Made by a program: the position numbers and the translations under genes
Assembly: GCA_010909165.1 (NCBI GenBank)
Contig: MU008158.1
Location: 2,691,478 to 2,755,477 of the forward strand
Length of the DNA stretch: 64,000 bases
Direction: 5' to 3'
From: Anthoceros angustus
Lineage: Eukaryota > Plantae > Anthocerotophyta
The notes under the pieces: generated by a model
Seen by the model: the letters and a program-made list of their open reading frames with translations, nothing else
Databases searched by the model: none
What the model was told of the DNA's origin: nothing
Shown: positions 1 through 45,518 of the stretch, piece by piece
Numbering within the stretch: position 1 is the first letter of the stretch
Layout of the letters: every line of letters begins with the position of its first letter

Positions 1-1390
1 GCAACTTTGTTGCCTCGAACCTCTCCTCTTGCCTCTAGCATTTTGTGGAGGTCGACCTCCCACCGTCTTCGCAATGCAAAGGCAAAGGCCTTTCCAACCT
101 CGGTGGAGATGGATGACCTCAAAGGGATGCCATGCATCTTCAAGCTCCTTGCTTGTGAGAGTCCCTCGGTTTCCCATAAATGCACCAAATAGGTGCTAAG
201 ATAGCAGCCTTGGTCCTTCCTCATCCACAATTTGGCTTGAGGAGCTTCTCTCGATGGTGTATACGCTTCATACATGATAGTCCCCAATCGGCTTGGCTCC
301 CGAAATCTTCCACAAAAATTGGAGGAAGTTGGTGCTGAAATAAGAGTGCGTTGGTAATTTACCAACGGCACAATCTTTGCGAAGAGCCTCCACTTGACTC
401 CTTGATGCTCTCGGTCTTCCGGCCATTCTTGGCGTGGGCCTTCACTCCTCCATCCATCATGTAACTCTGCGGGATGTCGGGAGGCTGTCCTCTTCCTCCA
501 TTCAACCTTTCGAGGAGAGCAATTCGAGCTCTCTTCCTCCGGTCTTCCATACACTGTCGAATACTTCTCACGGTCCAGCGGGATCATCTAGCATTCCTTC
601 GGCGGCGGCTTGATTGATGGAGGTTGATGTAACACTCCTCAATCAATTCCAAATTGGTGTAGGCCCATTGGCGGCCATACACCCATCCTGTGGATGTTCT
701 CCTCCTCCGCCTTGAAATCAACCAAATCTCGGGGTTGGCTGACAAAGCAAGTGAATTGGGGCATCACAAGTTCACCTCCCACGGCGGCGCGCCCTCTTTC
801 TTTCTTCCTTTCCTCTCGCGAGGAGCCCTTGCAGGCGGCTCCTTCCCTTTTCCAGCTCGAGGCATGGCACCTTCCTTACTCCTGCTCTAGCAAGAGGATT
901 ACTTCCCAATTTCAGCGTTGTGTGCTCCAAACTTCCTCAACTCCTTTTCTTCGGTGACTCCGACACAGCACAAACACGTTAGCCACTGTCTTGAGCCTCC
1001 AGGCTGCTGCTTCTCCTTGATTTCTTCTCCAGGCCGGCAGGTGTCGATTTTCCTCCTTCTACTCTCTTTTCCCACCTTGCTTCCGGTGCTCAACTCCGCT
1101 CTGCGGTGGCTCCTTCAATGTGTCTCTTTTCCGGTTGAAGAGCTTCTTGGTGCCACGGCGTCTTCTTGCGCCTCCTCTTTCTTTTCCCGCTGGTCTTCTC
1201 CTTTCCTTGCCGCCTTCCTCTCGTGGGTGTGCAGCGGCATGGCGCTTCTCCTTCGCTTCTTTGCGCTCCGCTCCGGTCTCGATCTCTTGGGGCGAGTTCT
1301 TAGCTCGAAGGAAGTTACGCCCCAAAGCGCACTTTGCCCTTTGGATGGCGCCACACGGCCACACAACCCTAGATTTGTCATCATTCCAAA
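1..1390 (-). pseudogene. Degenerate, probably retroelement-associated ORF remnant
   Basis: Broken minus-strand ORFs rich in K/E/R (1059-1364, 1115-1384, 899-1093, 359-571). A manually read segment, NLELIEECYINL, resembles the LVxEFYANL motif of plant LTR-element accessory ORFs. No RT or integrase motif was seen. Confidence 0.3.
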
Positions 1391-3476
1391 ATCCTAATCT
1401 ATCTATAATACCTATTTTCCTACTCTAATTAATCTCACTAATATATTTATCCTATTGATGAGCATATATAGTGGATATCCCCTATTCTAATTTCCTTTTT
1501 GCGAGATTCGTCGACCTACCACGGTGATGCCTTGACCTACTGGTAGTGTGGCTCGGCGTGATACTGACCTACCGCCCTTGCCTTCTTCTCTCGGCCATTT
1601 CGACCCGTTTCTTTCCTCACGGGATATCCTTTTGCCTTCCTAATATCCTACAACTCCAGCTTCGATTCTTGAGAAAATTTCTGGCATGCTCCTCTTCAAT
1701 CGTTCCAAAAAAAATCAAACTTGTTTCTTGAACTCTTTTGGGTGGTTGCCCAAACTTTTCGTTCCACATTGCTGCGGTGGAGATCGTCTGAGTCATGGCA
1801 AACACGAGCCATCCACCGTCGTGGTACGGAAAAGCGAGTTTACGCGAAAATATTGCGAGATGCATATAGCGGGCGCAAATGTTCACTCAAGTATTTTGGT
1901 AGCATGGTGGTATTCGACCACTTCCATATCGGGAGGTTCATATCGCCGTCGGTCGGTGGCGAGGATCATCGGCGCTTCATCCTCCTTTGGTTGTCCGGTG
2001 ATTCAAGAGGAGAATGTATCGGATTTTGATGAGCGTGCCGCCGCGATCCATAATATGAGTACATGCCTCACGCTCTGGTTTGTGTTTTGCGGATGGCTTT
2101 CGGACCAAGCGGAGTAAAGTCTTTGAGCAGGGGCCATGGTTGAGAAAAGCAGGACGGGCCGGCGGTTATGACCCCAGAACATTGTCGCGGTCGGGACGAA
2201 GACCTCAAGACCCATAAGCGCGACAACTTTGACCCCGTGACACTACCTCGTAGAGCGAATCATTCAAAGTCCATACAAGCGGTATCGACATGATCGGAAA
2301 GATGTTCTGGAACACCTCTCCTTTTTGACATCGGACATGAATTGGCATGCAATAGCGTCCCGTTGGACATCGTATGTCGTACATCTTGGATGCGATCAAG
2401 TATAAAATCTTCTGTCTTGGTCTTTGTTTTGTTCAACGCGGTTTGTGGAGAAGGATGACCAAAGTCGTAATTTTTCTGCCTCGAAGACGAATGACTTCTC
2501 AGCTGACCCACGGCGTCAAGGGTATACTTGCGATCAGGACTTTTGACCGTGGCTTGAGGAAAGTGTGAGAGAGGAGGCATTGCGGGGTTGCGTAACAATG
2601 ATGGACACAAAGTGTTCCACAAAGTGTTACACGAATTTGCTTAGAAGGAATCATGTTGGTTCGAGCATATGCAGGTTAGATTGAACCAAGGATTGGGTGA
2701 GTAGGAGTGGAGTGCAGGGGCCGGGTTAAATCAGCCTTGGCCAGTCCGTCGATGCATCTCGGGGAAGCAGCCAAGCATTGCATTTCTGGGGAAGGAACTA
2801 GGTGCATCTGCGAGGCATGTAGTCAACCCAACAATGCTGATTAGCGCCCCATGATAACTTCTTCTTTGGGAAGCAACCCGTCTTCAAGAAGAGGCATCAA
2901 CAATGCTTCTTCAATGCCGTCAGCGGATGGGGATCAATACTGCCTCGGTTTCCGTCGGTGGCCGGTGGTGTCCATGATACTCTGGAGCCGGGCGTCCAGT
3001 TTCATGGCGGAGACTTGGTGAGCCACTTCCATTTACTCGAAGGTGATCGATCGGGTGTGAGGAGGGCGTCCGGGGCGAACACAGGACAGGGGCTGCGGAT
3101 GGCATTCTACCATGTGATGAGGACAAAGATGCGCGGTTGGAAATGAAGGTGGGAACCACGATAAATTTGCAAGGGGTGAATATACCGTTGGGGGTTGCGA
3201 CTTTTATCCTCAAGAGGTTGCACATGGGTGTAAAACATGCGTATCTGAGGATTTCCATAAAATTTAGCACCAAAACATGGTCTCCACCATTGGTTGCATG
3301 TCTTGGCATCGAACGTCGAAGGGTTTACGCATTCGAACTTTACACTTTCCTTTATAATCGGACCCATGTGGTGGACCATTCATGCCGGTGTTACGCGTTC
3401 TTCCTCCCCTTCAAGTAGGGTTCTAAGGGTGACCATGGACCTCACCTCCTGATGTGGTCCAAGATAGTAAATGGAA

Positions 3477-25171: not shown

Positions 25172-27964
25172 TTAAGTGGTCAAGATCTCCGGGAGGCTGA
25201 TTGAACCCTTCGAGCCCCTGATGGCTGCTGAGGTGTCAGGGAAGTACTCCAAGCCATTCGGCAGGTCAGTCACCGCACCATCTTTCGTCACTTCGACTGG
25301 AAACGATAACAGATGCCCAGGCAAGTCAACAATCTCTTCTCCTGCATACAATTCAAGCAAGTGATCTGCCTGCCTATTGACTTCCCTGATGCACTCCAGG
25401 CTCGAAGGGTCTGCGAAGACCTCGTCCAACCGCCCTAGATGCTCATACCACAGCGACTGTCTGAAACCATGAATGGCACCTCGGGGCAGCTGCTCGGCTA
25501 TCAGATGATGAGGTTGATATGCTCCAATTGCAATTTCAGAATCCCGTGAACCATCCATGGAGCGTTGATTAATATTTGCAGATCCTACAATGATATACTC
25601 ATCATCCACTGCAGAGGAGGATGCACATCCAAACAAACCAGGCATTAGTGACGTTAGCAACCAATTAATGCAACAGCACGCAACTGGTGCTACCAGAAAT
25701 TGCAATAGGCATCTAATCAATAGAACAAGGCCATCAGAACCTAGGGCTCACCGATCATCATCTTCGAATGGACGTAGATCATAAAACGCCGATTATCTTG
25801 CGCTTTCTGGTAGTCACTTCCTGGCTCCGGAGTCTTTGAAGGCAGATATTCCACACCTTCCTTCGTTTCACGGTTGCCGAGGCAGAAAAAGGTTAAGTAG
25901 TCACGAGGATTTTCATCCTCAATCTGCTTGGCATGCAAGGCTTCTGCGATGTACTTGTACATCATCTGCTGAGTTTTCCTCATCCAGTCCAAGATAGCTT
26001 GCACCGAAGCACTTTCAGGCACACCTTCAGGCCACATGGGAACCACAACGTAGACAGCAAAACGTTCACCCGCTTCAATCTTGTTGACAATTTTAAGTGC
26101 AAGCTCAATTGGAATAAGATGTGAAGCTCCTGCGTGCTGATCCTCAGACCAGGCAAAGCAGCTCCCCAGAAAGTACTGGTTTTCGATGTAGATGAAGTTT
26201 TTCGCTCGCCGGATAGCATGGACATAAGCATCATGAATGCTCTTGTCTATTGTGTTGTTCTTCCCACTCATAAGACCAGCTTTAGCAGCATCACGGGGAT
26301 TCTCAGGAAACCCAGCTGCAGCGCCTGCATCAATCGATCGGAAAAGCTGCACATTCCAGGTCTCCTGATCATCACTGCTAATGACTTCTGTGGGAGGTCC
26401 CATGTTTGGAATATTTCTAATATCCCTCAGGGAATCATCTCCCTTGCCCTGCTTTCTCCAGCGCTGTTCAAAGTTGTACAGGACATCCCATGCTACAGGA
26501 CCCTCCACCCTGGAATGAATATCATGCCATGGCTCCCTAGGACCACCAGACTCAATGGTCGCCCCAGTAAAGTTTGGCTGGTGGAAATCCGAATGGTTAA
26601 CAGAGTCAAGCGTCCTGAAGAGGGAGTGACGTTGATTGTCATAACGCCCATCACAAAGATCAATTCCGCCAACAAAACTAACGATGCGCAAGTCCGCAGA
26701 TCCACCAGGCGAAGGAGCGTCAACAATGACGGTTTTCTGGTGATGCGTGAACATTAACTTGATCTCACTGCCCTGGACAAAACTGAGGGAATCATCGGGA
26801 TCCCGCGGACAAAGCACACAATTGACTTGCGAGTCTCGGAAATACTCACTCGTATCTTCATCGTGAGTGGCCATGAGCCCATCCTTCTTCAGCGAACCGA
26901 CCGAAGTCCTGTCATCCCAGACCAGAAGATTGACTGTAACCCCTTCCTCGGCCTTCTTCTTCAACAGATCTCCCAAAGTTAACCCTTCATCTCCCGGAAC
27001 AGGCCTCTCCGGATCTCGGATCAACGTGATCTGAGTGTAGACAGACCAACCGGTGATGTAAATGATGTTCTTGGCATTATGGATGGCTTCAAACACATCC
27101 TCCCAGCACCTCCCAGGCCTGAAGGCCAGCCCACCGTCCAGCTGCACGTCGGGAGCGAAGTCATTGGCGGCATGTGCGTCTTGATAGAGCGTGACTCTGC
27201 AACCAGTCCTCTGCGGGAAGTAGGTGTAGGGGACGCCGGGGTAACTAGGGCCCTTAATTCCTGCCCCCCAGTGATCATCGTGTGTGGCTTCAAAAAACTG
27301 CAGTCGAAATCTGAGCTTGGCATCACCAATCTTGTCACCTTTCCCATCATCCTTTAGCAGATCGTACCACCCCTCCACCGCTTGTCCTCCCAACAGGTCA
27401 GAGGCTGCCACTCTAGCCGTGCCGAGCACGTCCGCCCCAATAGTATTGCTGTCCTTGATGCTCAAACAAACATAGTCCACACTGTGTGCACAGTAGATAT
27501 GGAAGTCCTCATTCCAGACAGGATTGACAGGCGCCTTCTCAATCACACGGGTGCGGCCAACCGTAGCATTCTTCCCCAGGTTGATGGTGCAGTACAGCCT
27601 GCTGGCTCCCTTCCCAAACCCGACCGCCTCCTCGATGTTCTCCACAAGCTACAATGGGACAGACAACATGTCAGCAACGCAACCGAAAGGCCAGTTCTAG
27701 TCCGAAGCCTACAAATCAAGACCGTCTTCCAAATAGAAACTAGGAGCCCCCGGCACATTCCGAGCAGCGCGTTTCCGGAAAGACTGAGATCTGCGGCGCC
27801 AAGGACTACATGCATGATAGGCAAAGCAGGGATGAGCTGAAAGGCCGAGGACCTACCTTTCTGATGAACTTGGGAGCGCCGCCAGTGGTTCGCTCCGGGT
27901 CGATGAGGTCTTGAGCCTCGAAGACGGAGGCGGCCAAAGTCCCGTGTAGCAGGTAGAAAGCCAT
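25172..27964 (-). CDS. PLDalpha: Phospholipase D alpha (C2-PLD), 3 exons: 27964-27857, 27648-25752, 25608-25172
   Basis: N-terminal LLHGTL C2 domain, two HKD motifs (HHQKTVIVD; VHSKMMIVDD joined across intron 2), [12 protein letters not shown]-terminal LPEILTT and canonical GT-AG splice sites. Confidence 0.97.
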
Positions 27965-34810: not shown

Positions 34811-35938
34811 ATGCAACAAGATGAGGCCCCCTTTGCAGCAGAAGAATCTGTGCAAGAAGCAACTCAAGCAGGTGTTTCAGAGCAGAAGTCTGGTGGAATG
34901 GATGATGCCCAAAACCAGGAGGGCCAAATCGCAGGCCTTCAGAGGAAAGGCATGGCGGAATTTTTGAGAGCGTACTTTCTGGCCAAATATATGCAAAGTG
35001 ACAACGTCCCTTGCAAAATAGAGCAGGTATTCTAACATTTTCAGAAAACTTGGGGGCCTGAAAGGTGCATTGTCGTCATGGGCCAGTGCATAACTCCTCC
35101 CTGTTCACAATTCAGGATATTTACTACCTCTTGCTGGCATGGTTGTGTGAGTGTCTTTATCCAGCTGTATGTGTGTCACGGATAGTGTGCTCTCCAGCTT
35201 AGCCGCGATGGGGTCCTCGCAAGGCCTTCCCCATGACGCGAAAATACCATCCGTCTGTTCATTTGCAGGGACTGTACCTTGGATCTATTGGAGCAGCATA
35301 TAATAAGGCGGCACTGATGCATCTGAATGTGACCCATATTTTAGTTGTTGCCAATTCTGTTGAAATGCCTTTTCCTCGCGAATTCAAATATTTGCGTATC
35401 GACGGTGAGTCTGGACTTCCCTCTTGATTGTGATTAGAAGCAGTGGCCTCATTCTTGGGGCAACACAATCCGTTATTCAAAGTTGTTTGACTTCCTGCGT
35501 CCAACATCTAATACAAAGTGTGTGAAAGCAGTTTTGGACAGTCCAACGGTGAATCTGTTGGAGTATTTCAGTACATGTTTTTCGTTTATTGATGAAGGAA
35601 GAAAGGGTGGCGGTTCTGTGCTGGTTCATTGCTTTGCAGGAAAATCCAGAAGGTGTAACCCCTCTCCTTGCTCGTTCGTTGTGGTTTGAGGACTCCTCTT
35701 GTGGCTTGCAAACGGCATTGAACCCACTTTTACTCCATGGGTCTTGTGCAGTGTGACAGTTGTTTTAGGATACTTGATGAGAAGGTATGCTTGGACCCTG
35801 TCTCAAGCATTAGAACTTGTGAAGGCTAAGCGACCCCAAGCATCACCAAACAATGGGTTCATGTTGCAACTTCACAGCTTCGAAGAGCAATTGCGGGGTG
35901 TGTGTTTTCCTGTCCTGTGGTGGTTGTCGTTGAGCTAA
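34811..35938 (+). CDS. Dual-specificity protein phosphatase (DsPTP1-like), about 4 exons
   Basis: GLYLGSIGAA...VTHILVVA; VLVHCFAGKSRS signature (HCxxGxSR) completed across an intron; VTVVLGYLM...RPQASPNNGFMLQL. Exons are approximately 34811-35026, 35270-35404, 35531-35651 and 35753 onward; the last exon boundary is uncertain. Confidence 0.9.
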
Positions 35939-36393
35939 CTGGTGGTTTCCGCCAGAGCACTGATCCTGTGAGCACTGGTAGGCGGAACGCGACGTGACGG
36001 CAGCAACGTCTGACGCGCGCGCCGTCATCCTGTGCTGAGAGATTGGAGTCCTGCTCCCTGGAATAGAATAGCGGCCATAGTCGAGGTATCTACTCTATTG
36101 CAGTGCGTTGGTTCTCCCCCTTCCGGCAAATGGGTATTGTGCGTGAGAAATGTGTATGAGATAAGACTGTAGGTTTAGGTCGTGTTTTCTATGCCTCATC
36201 GTGACCATACACATAATTTCAGGTAATCTATACCACAGCCTGGCAGAGACGCGTCTGTTGCCATCCCAGGGACGGAAAGAACTTGCTTGCCTGCCAGCTT
36301 TCTCACTGATCGCAAGGGACGCTCACGATGAAAGAACCCGACAAGCAACTGTAAACTCCTTGAGTACGAGGTTATGAAACCCGGAACCCGCAT

Positions 36394-39300
36394 CTACGTC
36401 TTGTAGATTGGGAGATCAGTGAAATTCCAGTCTTCATCCACAAAGTTAGCTTTTGTTGTCGCGGAAAAGAGACTGCATGATCGCGCAGGTGTGGCGGACT
36501 GTTGTGAGAGGCTTTGATGAGGTTTATCAGCTAAAGTGAACAAAGTGTCGCCAGAAACAAGCTGATACTCCAAGGATTTAATATCTACTGGCATGCTTGG
36601 GCATCCGTTCCTTTCAGCCTGTTGGGTATCCTGTCGTTCGGCCTTCGCCAACATGGTTCGATACCGTTGCGCTTCATCTTTCCTGCCGAGACTGCCACAC
36701 ATTTGCACGAGGTACCGAAGGGACTCCACATTGTCAGGTTGGGAGGCAGAGATGTCCTTGTACTTGGCTAAAGCCTTTGAGTAAGCTCCGGTCCGCCGAT
36801 AACATGATGCTATCAAAAGCTGCCATTTAACCTGCAAGGCACTGTATGTCAAGCATTTTGAAGACTGCTGTCTGGTCTGCCGGTTTAGATGGGGTGGCGA
36901 CAGAAAGTTTTACCTCACCAGGCTCAATTCTGTGAGCTAGGTCGAAGAAAGGTAAGGCCTTTTCATAAACTTCGGTCTTGTTATAAAACTCTCCCAGCCA
37001 GGCTATGATCTCCATATTCACAGGATATACTCGATGAGACTCGCTGTAATAGTGCAAGGCTTTCAGTTCATCTTCGAGGTTGCTGTGGAGATGACCCAAA
37101 GTCGCAAGAATACCAGCATCGTGCATTGCCCGCGTGTTCACAATCTCCAGCCACTTGATAGCCTGACTAACGTTCCCCATAAGCTCGTTCAGCTGCCCGA
37201 TCTGCTTGACCACTCACAACAGAGAGATTATGTGCGAGACGAGTCAAATTCGCCAGGTTAGAATGAAGTCTCAACATTAATTGGTAGTACCTGAAACAGG
37301 ACCTCCACGTTATTAGAAAGAACATTACTGAGTTTCTTGAAAATACTCAAAGCATCTGGAAGGGAACCCAGCTTTCGATTGGCAAGGCCAAGGTTGTAGA
37401 TAGCCTCGACACAATCTGCGTCAACCTCTACTGCCTCTGCGTACAATGCCTTGGCACCCTCGACATCACCCTGCCATGAGGAAGGGAGCATCTTGTACTC
37501 AGCGCAAATGAAGAGCATTTTCGACAGCAGTGATGATTGATTCTACAAAAGCGACGACACCTAGAGGATTACCCTAGAGAACAGACAATTTCCTTTATTG
37601 ACAAGTGCACAGACGTTGTATCGGTTTGTCTTCACGGCAAGCTCAGCATTTTTTTCTGCATTCGACAAATCCCCTTCAAGATAATACAGGAAGGACAAGT
37701 TGGTTGCAGCGCGGGCTTTCAAGTCCTTCTCCTTGCGCTGGAACTCTTTCAACAAACCGATAGCCTGGAGTAATAGGAGGTCGTGATGAGCCTTCTCCCT
37801 CGAGGTCCACACAGGCAGTTCTTTTTTATCAGATCATTAGTACCATGCTCTGAAGGGTGTCATAGGGAGCATTACTTGACTGTAGTTCTTTCTACGCAGA
37901 TGTTGGATAGCTTTGTCCATTTCCATCTCGTGAGCTAAAGCGACATACTGCTGATCTTTAAGCAGATCAATCACCCAGTCGTAACCTTCCACAAAAGTAG
38001 TTCCAATCACTGGCGCGATGAGCCTAGCCGCAGTCAGTATGTACTTCGTGACATGCTGCTGCCTGACCCGAAGCTCCTCTTTCAGAGGATCATTCTGGAA
38101 AACGACAGAGTGAGAGTGCACCCAGGATGCTGTTTAAATATGCAACGACCGAAGCTAGTCACTTTTTTAAGGCAGGGGATTGGAAGTTGAGTAATTATGG
38201 CGCCCAACATTCCAGGACTTGTTTCTATAACAAACCTGGGATCGGTCTGCATCAGAATCATCATCGGAATCTGGATCATGGAGCCTCAATATGAGCATCT
38301 TGGTGAAGCAATTCCTCATCTTATCAGCATTGCCCAGGATGTAGTAGCACACGATGGAGTTATAGCCTGTCTGATGATCTAGTTTTAACTCCATGATGGC
38401 TTCAAATGACTGCACAGCATCCTGAGGAAGGATACAACGTCATCAGACGCTGGAATGGGGACAAGAAACCCGAACCGTGGATCCTGAGCTCAAAGTCGTG
38501 CATAACCTGATATTGCCCGAGCTTCATGAGAGCATTGCCGATATTCCGCATGATCTTGTACCGCGTCTCCTTGTAGCTATTGGGCGTCTGGTCCAGAGCC
38601 ATGCGGTACATCTTGATGGCTACCGGGTACTTCCGCTGCTCATAATAAACATTTCCCATGTTCACCCTGAGCCTGCCACCGTGCGCAAACTGTGTCGACC
38701 TCTATACATTCAGCAGACAACATATGGAGAACATCCCTGCCCTCACAAACAAACAAAAAAGCAACCTGCTTATTTTTAACTATCTGCGAGTAGGAGCTCA
38801 GAGCCTCCGACTGCAACCCGTTAACCTCATACTGATGCCCCAGGTTGAAGCACACAGCAAACGTCAACTCCAAGTTCATCCTGTCACCCTGTACACTCAC
38901 TCGTGAGATGGCAGCAGGAGAAGGCAGCACACACAGGGTTGGTGTCTACCAGGCCTGCCTGTTCTCGATGCTTGCATAGAGCCCTCTCTCTTTTGCTGGC
39001 TTCCTTAGCCTTCTCCAGAGCAGCCGCATGGTCCCCCTGACCACAGCGAGCCCAAATGAGCACGAGTTCCCTCCGATCTTCCCGTACCAGCAAGGTGAGA
39101 AAAGTAAGGTTACAGCAAGACTGGCAGCAGCGCTGTCCCGCAGCAGCTGGTTCACACTGCGCTCCATCTCCCGGCCTTGCTGCTCCGGATCCACAGCATC
39201 CTTCTTCCCGATGGCTGCTGCCTTCACCCCTTGATTCAGCGGATCAAACCTGGCGCCCTGCCCTGCCCCGCCCGCGTCACCCCAGCTCTCTAGCGTGCAA

Positions 39301-39805
39301 TCCAATCCAATCCAATCCAATCCTGCCGCAGCATGCCCCGCATGTTAACCTACCTCGACGAGTACCCGGCAGCTCGAACCGCCGTCATGGGCCGGGAAGC
39401 ATCTGTGAGCGCCACGGATGCAACGGAGCGAGCCCGCGGCCTCCCAGAGCTGTGCGGCCTCCACAGCGAGGCGGCGTGCGGCGTCGGCGTCCTGCATGTC
39501 GTGCTGCGGGAGTCGAGAGGGGGGCAAGCCACGAGCCCCTGCGCACACACAAAACATCCCACATTGCGAAATCTGCTCACCGCCATCGTTCATCAGCACA
39601 GGAAGCACAGGACAGGAAGCATCAGGACAGGCCAGTGCACCTGATTGTCAGAGGCAGATGACGCCACGCTCAAAGGCCAGGACTCGGGGTTCGGCCCTCT
39701 CGCACCCAGAGCAGGCTGCTCCTCGTAGTCGTTGTAGCCCTCATACAGCTCGTTGTTGAAGCTCTGCATCGAAGACCGCACATCTCCAGCCCCCGCCATC
39801 GCCAT
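36394..39805 (-). CDS. IFT88: Intraflagellar transport protein 88 (TPR protein), multi-exon
   Basis: NLELTFAVCFNLG, VNMGNVYYEQRKYPVAIKMYRMALDQ, KIMRNIG, AATNLSFLYYLEGD, NRYN...ALVNKGNC, VKWQLLIASCYRRTG and NVESLRYLV, all hallmark IFT88 segments separated by short introns. The ATG at 39805 is used because the listed ORF starts at a TTG. Confidence 0.95.
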
Positions 39806-40085
39806 CGGCGTCGCCAAGGCAGTTTTGCCTCTCCGCTACACTCTGCTGCGCACGCAATTGGAGTTCACCAACATTCCATCAGCAGGCTTTCGCAATTCCC
39901 ATTGGCAGCGACAAATTCGGTTGGGGTTTGCACCGGACCGGCCACACACATGCATGGCACAGACATACATGCATTGCGACGGGACGCATGCAGAGGGCTT
40001 GTGACGGATGGACGCGACGGATGGGCGGCGTTTCGCTTGAGAGGGAGTGTAGTGAGGAGCTTGCGCTCGGGGAGCAGTGACTCGA

Positions 40086-40130
40086 GGCAGAGGCAGAGGC
40101 AGAGGCAGAGGCACACGGAGAAGCAGAGGC
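40086..40130. repeat. (GGCAGA)n simple repeat in the 5' region of the protamine-like gene
   Basis: ggcagaggcagaggcagaggcagaggca...gcagaggca. Confidence 0.8.
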
Positions 40131-40142
40131 AGGGAGCAGAGA

Positions 40143-40643
40143 ATGGGGAGGGCTCATCACCATCACCGCAAGTCCAGGCGCAGGCACAGGCGCAGGAGTA
40201 AGCACGCGGGCGGGCACAAACATGGCAAGAGGAGGAGGCATCATCCCACCTACCACTACATGATACAGAAGGTGCTGGCGAGCAGCAAGCACCGCGTGGC
40301 GGGATGCAGTGCAGACAGCATCGCGCACCTGTGCATGAAGATGTATGGGAGGAAGAAGGGGCCTCCTCCACTGCACATGGCCAAGCACATCCACAAGCAG
40401 GTGCGCCAGCTCTTCAGAAAAGGCAAGCTAGCGCAGAAAGGCCATCGCTACGTCCTGGCGGCCAATGTGAAGATTCACCGTCGTCGCTCTGGCCGCCGCA
40501 AGGGCCACCGCAAGGGAAAAGGCCGCCATCGTCGCCGGCGCAGACGCGGACGCAAGCATGGACGCAAGCATGGCCGCAAGCACGGCCGAAAGGGCCACAA
40601 GCGCAGGCGTCGTCGCAGAAGGAGGCGCCGCAAACACCATTAG
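40143..40643 (+). CDS. Histone H1-derived protamine-like sperm nuclear basic protein (166 aa, intronless)
   Basis: The central segment HPTYHYMIQKVL...CSADSIA...HIHKQVRQLFRKGKLAQKGHRYVL aligns by eye with the linker-histone winged helix (HPxYxxMIxxAI...SS..AI...LKxLVxxGKL.x.K.SYKL). It is flanked by R/H/K-rich tails with GRKH repeats and a poly-Arg end. The first in-frame ATG is at 40143. Confidence 0.85.
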   Translation: MGRAHHHHRKSRRRHRRRSKHAGGHKHGKRRRHHPTYHYMIQKVLASSKHRVAGCSADSIAHLCMKMYGRKKGPPPLHMAKHIHKQVRQLFRKGKLAQKGHRYVLAANVKIHRRRSGRRKGHRKGKGRHRRRRRRGRKHGRKHGRKHGRKGHKRRRRRRRRRRKHH

Positions 40644-41603
40644 CTTCCACACGTAGAGATATCTAGCTACTAGATATCTCATGGCACCCTGGGTATGTAT
40701 GTATGTCAAAAACCGAGCCATGCCAAAGCCGCAGGGCCTCAACCTTACCTCCTATCTAAAACACAACCCAGAATTCCACAATGTATTTCAAAAAAGAATC
40801 AAATTCCTGAATATGGGTCCACTGCGACTACCTATACTTTGGGGCACTACACCTTCCCTGGATTTGAATTCATATCTCAGCACTCTCAAAATTCAAAATG
40901 ACTCCCTCCTCTTCATCGTCCCCAACCTTCTTCTTCAAGGTGGCTTTTTTTTGCAGCTTGCCTTTGCACCCATCCTTCTTGTATTTCAAGTTGGACTCTT
41001 TCCCAAGCTAGCATTCTCGCAAGGTACATGTTGTCTCTTTCAAGTTGGGTTTTTTCCCAAGCTTGCTTTTGTTCAAGGTACATGAATCTTGATTTCTATA
41101 TTAATGTATTATATATATATATATATAATATTATCAAATTGAATCTTCTATTATATGTGAACAAATTAGTTGAAAGTGCGAGTAAAATTGAGATACATGA
41201 GATGAAATCTTGGTTATGACCTAAACAATATACCTACTGATCTGTTCCATCTTAACCATTTTTTTTTCAATGGTCATACATTTGTGATTGATTAATAGTC
41301 ATTGCTTTATTAAGAAACTTCATAATGTTGCAAAAGTATATCTTGTGCTTTCATATCTACTTGCCATGGTTCACTTATCTCATGATGCATGTATGCCAAC
41401 ATTGTGACAAAATCTGGATTATAAATAAGCGACAAAGATTAACACAAAAAATGACCCTATGACATAAAAATTGTCAATTAGCTTGTGAGAGTCTTTTTTA
41501 TCGCGATTGCTTATGAGAGTCTTTGATCTTTTGTTCAAAGCGTTGTACTTTTATTTTATTGATTGATAATAAAAATTTAAATTTCCGAATAAGATTCTTG
41601 AAA

Positions 41604-42743
41604 ATGCCTTGTGCAAACACTTGTGACAAGCAACTTCCTTGTGCTTTGGCCACGAAAATTCAAGAAGAACCTCTTGAAAATGCCTTTCTTTCAGGTGGGG
41701 ATATCAGGGTGATGTACAATATTTATAAATATCCTGAAAATTTATATACAACTAATGATGATCGTGAAATTTGGATGTTAAAAGAATCAAAATTGTTGTG
41801 CAAAAGGATCAAATTATTGGAAAGGTTTAGATTTGAAGAAAGTGCCTTCCAGTTAAGTAACCAATTAGTACATCACCTTGCTTGCATCCACAATCCGAGT
41901 TACATTTATCCAACTAAGCAGATAGATGAGTGGGGTTACTTGTTGAAAGGTGAGGATAAACTTTGCAAGCGACAATGGAATGAATATCTAGATTCCAAAG
42001 CCTTCGACCAACTCTTCCTCAAACTCTCACAAATCTTGCCAGACAATATGCAATCCAAGCAGAGTTTTGGAAAAGTTGCTTCTGAATTCATTGCAAAACA
42101 AGTTGTAATAAGTCGTACCATCACTGTTAAAAGTAAAACAGCTATGCAATACTCGCTTTTACCTGAAAGCACATTTTTGGGAATAAAAATATTAGTGGAA
42201 GCACCTAATTTTTCAAAGCTTTCAAACAAATATTTGAAAGAGTTCCTACTTCTATATAAGGAAATGGCAGCAGCATGCCTTGGAATGTGGAGGCTCCAAA
42301 AGTTGGGAACTCAATTAATGAACATTATTTTAAGGGCTTATGCTGCGAGTTTACATATCCAAGATTCTGCTCTTAGGGATATAAATAATCCAAACCGATA
42401 TGAGTTGTCAAAAAAAGGTACATTACCACTATTTAAAGAGATGTGCCAGAAGCTAGATCTTAATGTTCACCTCCGAGATCTTGCCAAATGTCTACAAACT
42501 CACATGGATGCAACTTGTGATCATGGTCCTTGTATACAAATTGAGCTATCAATAACTGGTATTAAACAACAATATTGGCTTGCTATAAAGTCTAACTTAA
42601 TTCAGGATAGTACAAAGCAGGAAGCATCATATATGACAAATCTTCTTGATAATTGTGATAAGTTAGCTAAATGGGTTGAGGAAATGCATAAAGAGGGGGC
42701 AAAATTTACTGGTCCAATAAGGCCCAGGTGGAAATATGTGTAA
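41604..42743 (+). CDS. Intronless AT-rich ORF of unknown function (379 aa)
   Basis: An uninterrupted 1140-nt ORF from the ATG at 41604, roughly one-third GC. An ORF this long is unlikely by chance at that composition. No family motif was recognised. Confidence 0.6.
   Translation: MPCANTCDKQLPCALATKIQEEPLENAFLSGGDIRVMYNIYKYPENLYTTNDDREIWMLKESKLLCKRIKLLERFRFEESAFQLSNQLVHHLACIHNPSYIYPTKQIDEWGYLLKGEDKLCKRQWNEYLDSKAFDQLFLKLSQILPDNMQSKQSFGKVASEFIAKQVVISRTITVKSKTAMQYSLLPESTFLGIKILVEAPNFSKLSNKYLKEFLLLYKEMAAACLGMWRLQKLGTQLMNIILRAYAASLHIQDSALRDINNPNRYELSKKGTLPLFKEMCQKLDLNVHLRDLAKCLQTHMDATCDHGPCIQIELSITGIKQQYWLAIKSNLIQDSTKQEASYMTNLLDNCDKLAKWVEEMHKEGAKFTGPIRPRWKYV

Positions 42744-44642: not shown

Positions 44643-45518
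<876 letters not shown>

Follow-up and report, generated by a model that had tools for sequence, protein, structure and literature searches.

A divergent pair of IFT88 and a putative H1-derived protamine-like gene in a seed-free plant, with co-expression and shared control as a plausible reading

Two genes of sperm type start back to back in the 64-kb window (the whole stretch of DNA that was analysed), and their position raises the question of whether flagella building and nuclear compaction are driven here from a common promoter or whether the two genes are neighbours by chance. The first-pass annotation had placed an IFT88 gene and a protamine-like gene head to head, and every coordinate of this layout was reproduced by direct reading of the sequence. 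The IFT88 ATG is found on the minus strand at 39805-39803 and the protamine-like ATG on the plus strand at 40143-40145, so that the two divergent start codons are separated by 337 bp (39806-40142), well within 1 kb. The coordinates, the layout and the two gene identities are shown here, whereas it is inferred that both genes are expressed specifically in sperm and are controlled together. The explanation preferred here, which is held with moderate confidence, is that of a real divergent pair of IFT88 and an H1-derived protamine-like gene that would be co-expressed and jointly controlled.

The IFT88 gene on the minus strand

The minus-strand gene (36394..39805) was delimited by exon-wise similarity and colinearity and has 12 or more coding exons, separated by short introns. 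Exon 1 (39805-39641) opens with MAMAGAGDVRSSMQSFNNELYEGYNDYEEQ and is followed by a GT donor after 39641, the second exon, near 39540-39350, encodes a stretch with RPMTAVRAAGYSS, and the TPR exons extend to the stop codon at 36394-36396. Exons were searched one by one. The exon at 36830-37213 matched proteins named 'intraflagellar transport protein 88' by JGI with an E value of 2.5e-42 and 76% identity, while the best natural PDB match of the exon at 38471-38665 was Chlamydomonas IFT88 (8bd7_A, residues 225-277, E 3.4e-18); the exon at 38949-39320 aligned weakly with residues 107-143 of the same chain. Along the TPR region, the exon-by-exon searches gave similarity that was specific to IFT88 and not of the generic TPR type.

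A metagenome scan with the IFT88 exon alignment returned 24 loci, consisting of distant plant-like contigs and alga-like loci. In three of them (L001, L002 and L004; 40-42% GC, 74-76% exon identity to the window), the IFT88 exons follow the same order as in the window, and since the exon order matches, these loci look like another land plant, presumably a peat moss, as the sample names suggest. L004 and L002 do not differ in the coordinates and identities of their IFT88 exons, and L001 is a close variant of them. Ten of the 11 queried exon pieces were colinear with IFT88 in these three loci, exon 1 being the exception, and the exon encoding RPMTAVRAAGYSS is common to L002. Exon 1 alone had no match in the PDB; it is assigned to IFT88 because its motif LYEGYNDYE also occurs in the first IFT88 exon of the three plant-like loci, together with the colinearity. 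The identification of the minus-strand gene as IFT88 was thus borne out by the JGI and Chlamydomonas matches and by the exon colinearity. As an intraflagellar-transport subunit, IFT88 would be needed in seed-free plants only when spermatids build their flagella.

A protamine-like linker-histone derivative on the plus strand

The plus-strand gene (40143..40643) is intronless and encodes a protein of 166 residues that was classified as a protamine-like linker-histone derivative from Pfam, ESM Atlas, AF2, Foldseek and composition. Its frame of 166 codons ends with a TAG at 40641-40643. Because a stop in the same frame is found about 90 bp 5' of the ATG, 40143 is the first ATG of the frame. The protein is composed of 26% Arg, 16% His, 14% Lys and 11% Gly; it contains a single acidic residue, and its pI is about 12. 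By composition, an Arg/His-rich N-tail (residues 1-33) and a C-tail with 47% Arg (residues 109-166) flank a core of mixed composition (residues 34-108), which Pfam, AF2 and Foldseek point to as a GH1-like winged helix.

With the core alone, the Pfam Linker_histone model (PF00538) gave 23.0 bits (E 9.2e-5), a narrow pass of the gathering cut-off of 22.4 bits, and with the whole ORF it gave 20.5 bits (E 5.5e-4), slightly below that cut-off. In the ESM Atlas, in which scores below 0.9 are leads and not proof, the closest cluster to the whole protein was a mollusc H15-domain family (0.89, 182 shared features), with an arthropod 'protamine-like' cluster at 0.84, and the core alone was closest to streptophyte linker-histone families (0.81). 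All ten of the best named matches were Linker_histone families. The single-sequence AF2 model of the core (pLDDT 67) has the order H-H-H-E-E, that is, three helices and a beta hairpin in winged-helix topology. When this model was submitted to Foldseek, ranks 1-4 were globular domains of H1.0/H5 (probability 0.80-0.95, TM 0.52-0.58), with 26-29% identity over 78 columns and E values of 0.09-0.44, which are non-significant taken alone; H1.0/H5/GH5 entries occupied ranks 1-4, 7 and 9-11 altogether, with TM values of 0.39-0.58. A wide VIA search found generic winged helices only (Z ≤ 5.8). The whole-protein AF2 model (pLDDT 61) likewise pointed to generic winged helices and gave nothing diagnostic in Foldseek and VIA, H1/H5 being at the top only with the core-alone model.

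Searches for sequence relatives were negative throughout. No match to the core was obtained by phmmer among 1.84 billion representative proteins, a word search with residues 30-118 gave none, the PDB sequence searches with the whole protein and with the core gave none either, and an exact look-up of the protein sequence came back blank. This lack of relatives fits a fast evolution of the gene, as typically seen in sperm nuclear basic proteins.

The H1-derived core is accepted because three weak, independent lines (Pfam, ESM Atlas and Foldseek) converge, and on these model-based comparisons it is very likely to be genuine. With its H1-related core, Arg-rich tails and extreme basicity, the 166-aa protein presents the features by which protamine-like (PL) proteins are defined. 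The earlier description of the plus-strand gene as an H1-derived protamine-like protein is therefore upheld by the Pfam score of 23.0 bits, the ESM Atlas clusters, the core fold and the composition. By analogy, the protein probably packs sperm DNA. The gene would be a fast-evolving, intronless derivative of linker histone H1 with tails turned Arg/His-rich and protamine-like, and its product would most likely replace or supplement histones as the spermatid nucleus condenses, as with the H1-derived protamines of Marchantia.

A different origin of this ORF was also considered, namely that it does not encode a sperm protein at all and corresponds to an H1 variant of somatic cells or of stress responses, or to a young ORF without function in GC/AG-rich DNA of low complexity. 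The empty word and phmmer searches are in line with such an origin, as are the long antisense shadow ORFs that overlie the same DNA and the short DNA repeats of which the tails are made. A 12-nt repeat of the CGCAAGCATGG type (family D3), present in three copies at 40539-40586, codes for the GRKH repeats in the C-tail and thereby suggests that this tail grew by replication slippage. Against such an origin, the GH1-like core was seen by three independent methods and in this frame only, and the GC3 of the ORF (0.75) is similar to that of IFT88 exon 1 and RPL8. In addition, somatic plant H1 is Lys-rich, while an extreme richness in Arg together with just one acidic residue typifies sperm nuclear basic proteins. 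A non-sperm ORF is thus considered improbable, and the H1-derived protamine-like gene is retained as the preferred reading.

The gene is followed at 40656-40680 (plus strand) by a perfect inverted repeat of 11 bp (GAGATATCTAG / CTAGATATCTC, 3-nt loop, family I5), which starts 13 nt beyond the stop codon. It was rejected as a notable structure, its fold energy being ordinary (z = -1.7).

The 337-bp interval and the DUO1 proposal

The interval between the two start codons (39806..40142) has 60% GC, as obtained by sequence reading and motif counts. It contains no TATA box (TATAWA), and two CCAAT boxes are found on its minus strand, at 39857 and 39901. Each of the two genes must have its core promoter and its 5' UTR inside this interval. 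In a GC-rich, TATA-less stretch of only 337 bp, the two core promoters would have to abut or overlap, and it is therefore likely that chromatin is opened jointly to some extent and that the genes are co-expressed in spermatids.

A more specific mechanism had been suggested from a CGGTT/AACCG MYB core at 39918..39922 on the plus strand, by which the MYB factor DUO1 would drive a bidirectional promoter. The core is indeed present at that position, in the context TTCGGTT (AACCGAA on the other strand), and the proposal is favoured by findings in Marchantia, where expression of MpPRM comes after that of MpDUO1 and requires it, and where no flagella are formed in Mpduo1 (PMC6290024). The DUO1 consensus, however, is 5'-RRCSGTT-3' (Higo et al. 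2018, PMC6290024), and TTCGGTT mismatches both of its R positions. Within 39806-40142, RRCSGTT has 0 matches against 0.18 expected; across the 64-kb window it has 38 against 45.8 expected and is not enriched. The shorter CGGTT/AACCG core occurred on average 0.37 times per interval in 2000 dinucleotide-preserving shuffles, with a probability of 0.32 of at least one occurrence. As to other MYB-type words in the interval, AACCGTC and AACCGC gave 0 matches and YAACNG one match against 0.88 expected.

The RRCSGTT match closest to the interval lies about 420 bp away, at 39377-39383 on the minus strand, in the IFT88 coding sequence, where it forms part of the TAVRAAGY codons. It was rejected as a regulatory site, as it is constrained by the conserved TAVRAAGY protein motif. 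The doubled GACGGAT of the GACGGATGG repeat (40003-40027) was likewise discarded as a DUO1 site, since its one mismatch to RRCSGTT would remove the AAC core of the MYB site.

The CGGTT at 39918-39922 carries no weight for DUO1 control because it fails the consensus, RRCSGTT is absent from the interval and a single 5-mer of this kind is expected by chance alone with P = 0.32. The use of the AACCG site as evidence for DUO1 could thus not be sustained. A DUO1-driven promoter acting through this site is regarded as very improbable. With the CGGTT site removed, which was the one piece of evidence cited for it, the regulatory idea has the standing of a hypothesis.

The interval also contains several repeats. 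A tandem 19-bp repeat in two copies and one further CATGCA copy (39944..39995, plus strand, family D5) give three RY-like CATGCA sites in mid-interval, of which one forms the complete palindrome CATGCATG. Counted on both strands of the interval, CATGCA reached 4 against 0.57 expected from shuffles (P = 0.006 in a post hoc test). RY elements are targets of B3-domain proteins in seed plants. About 115-140 bp 5' of the protamine-like ATG, a 13-bp tandem repeat (40003..40027, plus strand, family D8) carries GACGGATGG twice, and two copies of this motif were seen in none of 2000 shuffles of the interval. A (GAGGCA)n microsatellite (40084..40131, plus strand, family D1) follows directly 5' of the same ATG and probably belongs to the 5' UTR of the protamine-like gene. 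Its units share the reading frame of the ORF and, if translated, would give RGRGRG, but there is no ATG in front of them.

The tandem repeats of the interval are non-random. It is conceivable that the interval is a spermatid-specific bidirectional promoter that would link the assembly of flagella with the compaction of chromatin and would be run by the CATGCA sites (39944-39995) and the doubled GACGGATGG (40003-40027) and not by DUO1, and this idea is advanced as a speculative one of low probability. If true, such a repeat-driven interval would represent a new cis-regulatory code for the sperm genes of the lineage, acting for example through B3-domain repression outside the germline.

Conservation of the pair and comparison with known systems

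Conservation of the arrangement in relatives was evaluated in L001, L002 and L004. When the 16-20 kb of each locus were scanned in any frame for an ORF with at least 45% Arg+Lys over 40 residues, no such ORF was found. Two plant-like contigs have enough upstream sequence (they are near-identical to each other), and in these the divergent neighbour of IFT88 is a Myb/SANT-like gene. In L002 this is a two-exon gene of trihelix type at 962-3280 on the minus strand, about 2 kb away from IFT88. Arg-rich ORFs in a further locus with 69% GC (L024) were dismissed as a composition artefact and not as a counterpart of the basic gene. Lack of conservation, which the first-pass annotation had named as a result against its reading, was thus observed in these three loci, which represent distant relatives. 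Because no basic ORF lies near IFT88 in the three plant-like loci, the arrangement, as judged from these sequences, would not be ancestral to land plants. IFT88 and the basic gene, both of sperm type, are a genuine divergent pair, and the pairing is probably lineage-specific. As regards functional coupling within the window's own lineage, the absence in such distant loci is weak evidence against it.

In the rest of the 64-kb window, no other cilia or sperm gene was found. A dual-specificity phosphatase (DSP) gene at 35233-35940 on the plus strand is convergent with IFT88, a ribosomal protein uL2/RPL8 gene with one intron lies at 44643-45518 on the plus strand, and a probable phospholipase D-like gene was recognized at 25172-27645 on the minus strand by inspection, with no family scan. 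Transposon remnants are also present. About 0.9 kb 3' of the protamine-like gene, an AT-rich stretch (37-44% GC) holds an uninterrupted ORF of 406 aa (41523-42743, plus strand), for which Pfam gave no match; it could be a transposon or a gene specific to the lineage.

These observations bear on the simplest alternative to the preferred reading, according to which the adjacency is due to chance, both genes are expressed in sperm, each through elements of its own, and their being head to head neither matters for regulation nor was ever favoured by selection. The absence of the arrangement from L001, L002 and L004, the lack of a shared sperm-factor motif among those found in the interval and a window free of other cilia or sperm genes are all what chance would produce. 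The look-elsewhere effect is also large, as thousands of windows were read, and the location of a protamine-like gene beside one of the few hundred cilia genes by chance would not be rare (10-20% as a rough estimate). On the other side, 337 bp leave physically little room for two independent promoters, and close divergent gene pairs are generally co-expressed above background. Chance adjacency is therefore considered possible but rather unlikely, and the divergent pair with co-expression and shared control is kept as the preferred explanation.

Co-expression of IFT88 and the protamine-like gene is plausible by analogy because in Marchantia MpPRM needs DUO1, as do flagella, and an IFT gene is enriched in antheridiophores, where MpIFT52 is abundantly expressed (bioRxiv 10.1101/2021.07.10.451882). 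The use of H1-derived protamine-like proteins by bryophyte sperm is attributed to D'Ippolito 2019 where that work is cited in PMC12849711. Shared control of the two genes would be plausible. If they are co-regulated, the interval would be a compact natural promoter for two hallmarks of spermiogenesis, the building of flagella and the compaction of the nucleus, and it could then serve as a bidirectional driver specific to sperm and help in studying how sperm genes are regulated outside Marchantia.

In relation to known systems, the locus resembles the DUO1 regulon in its class of targets, since MpPRM and flagellum formation depend on MpDUO1. This regulon includes HTR10, DAZ1, GCS1/HAP2 and GEX2 in angiosperms, with homologues in bryophytes, and is characterized by RRCSGTT sites; unlike its promoters, the interval 39806-40142 is devoid of this site. 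With bidirectional promoters it shares divergent starts less than 1 kb apart and a GC-rich, TATA-less interval, and it differs from conserved ones in that the pairing is absent in L001, L002 and L004.

The protein itself follows the core-plus-basic-tail design of the animal PL-I/H1-type sperm nuclear basic proteins of molluscs and arthropods, a resemblance of design and composition and not of demonstrable orthology. The nearest parallel in plants is Marchantia polymorpha, in which PROTAMINE-LIKE (MpPRM) and male-germline H1-derived protamines have reportedly been described (Higo 2016/2018; D'Ippolito 2019). As in these proteins, a linker-histone core is combined with Arg-rich tracts in a plant with flagellate sperm, and the predicted role would be the same, the compaction of spermatid chromatin. 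As to differences, the 166-aa protein has no similarity to any database protein detectable by word search or phmmer, and it is unusually rich in His (16%), with a basic tail at either end of its core. What is firmly gained is a further H1-derived protamine-like gene from a seed-free plant, fast-evolving and with an unusually high content of His, which fits the known picture of PL-type proteins in bryophyte-grade sperm.
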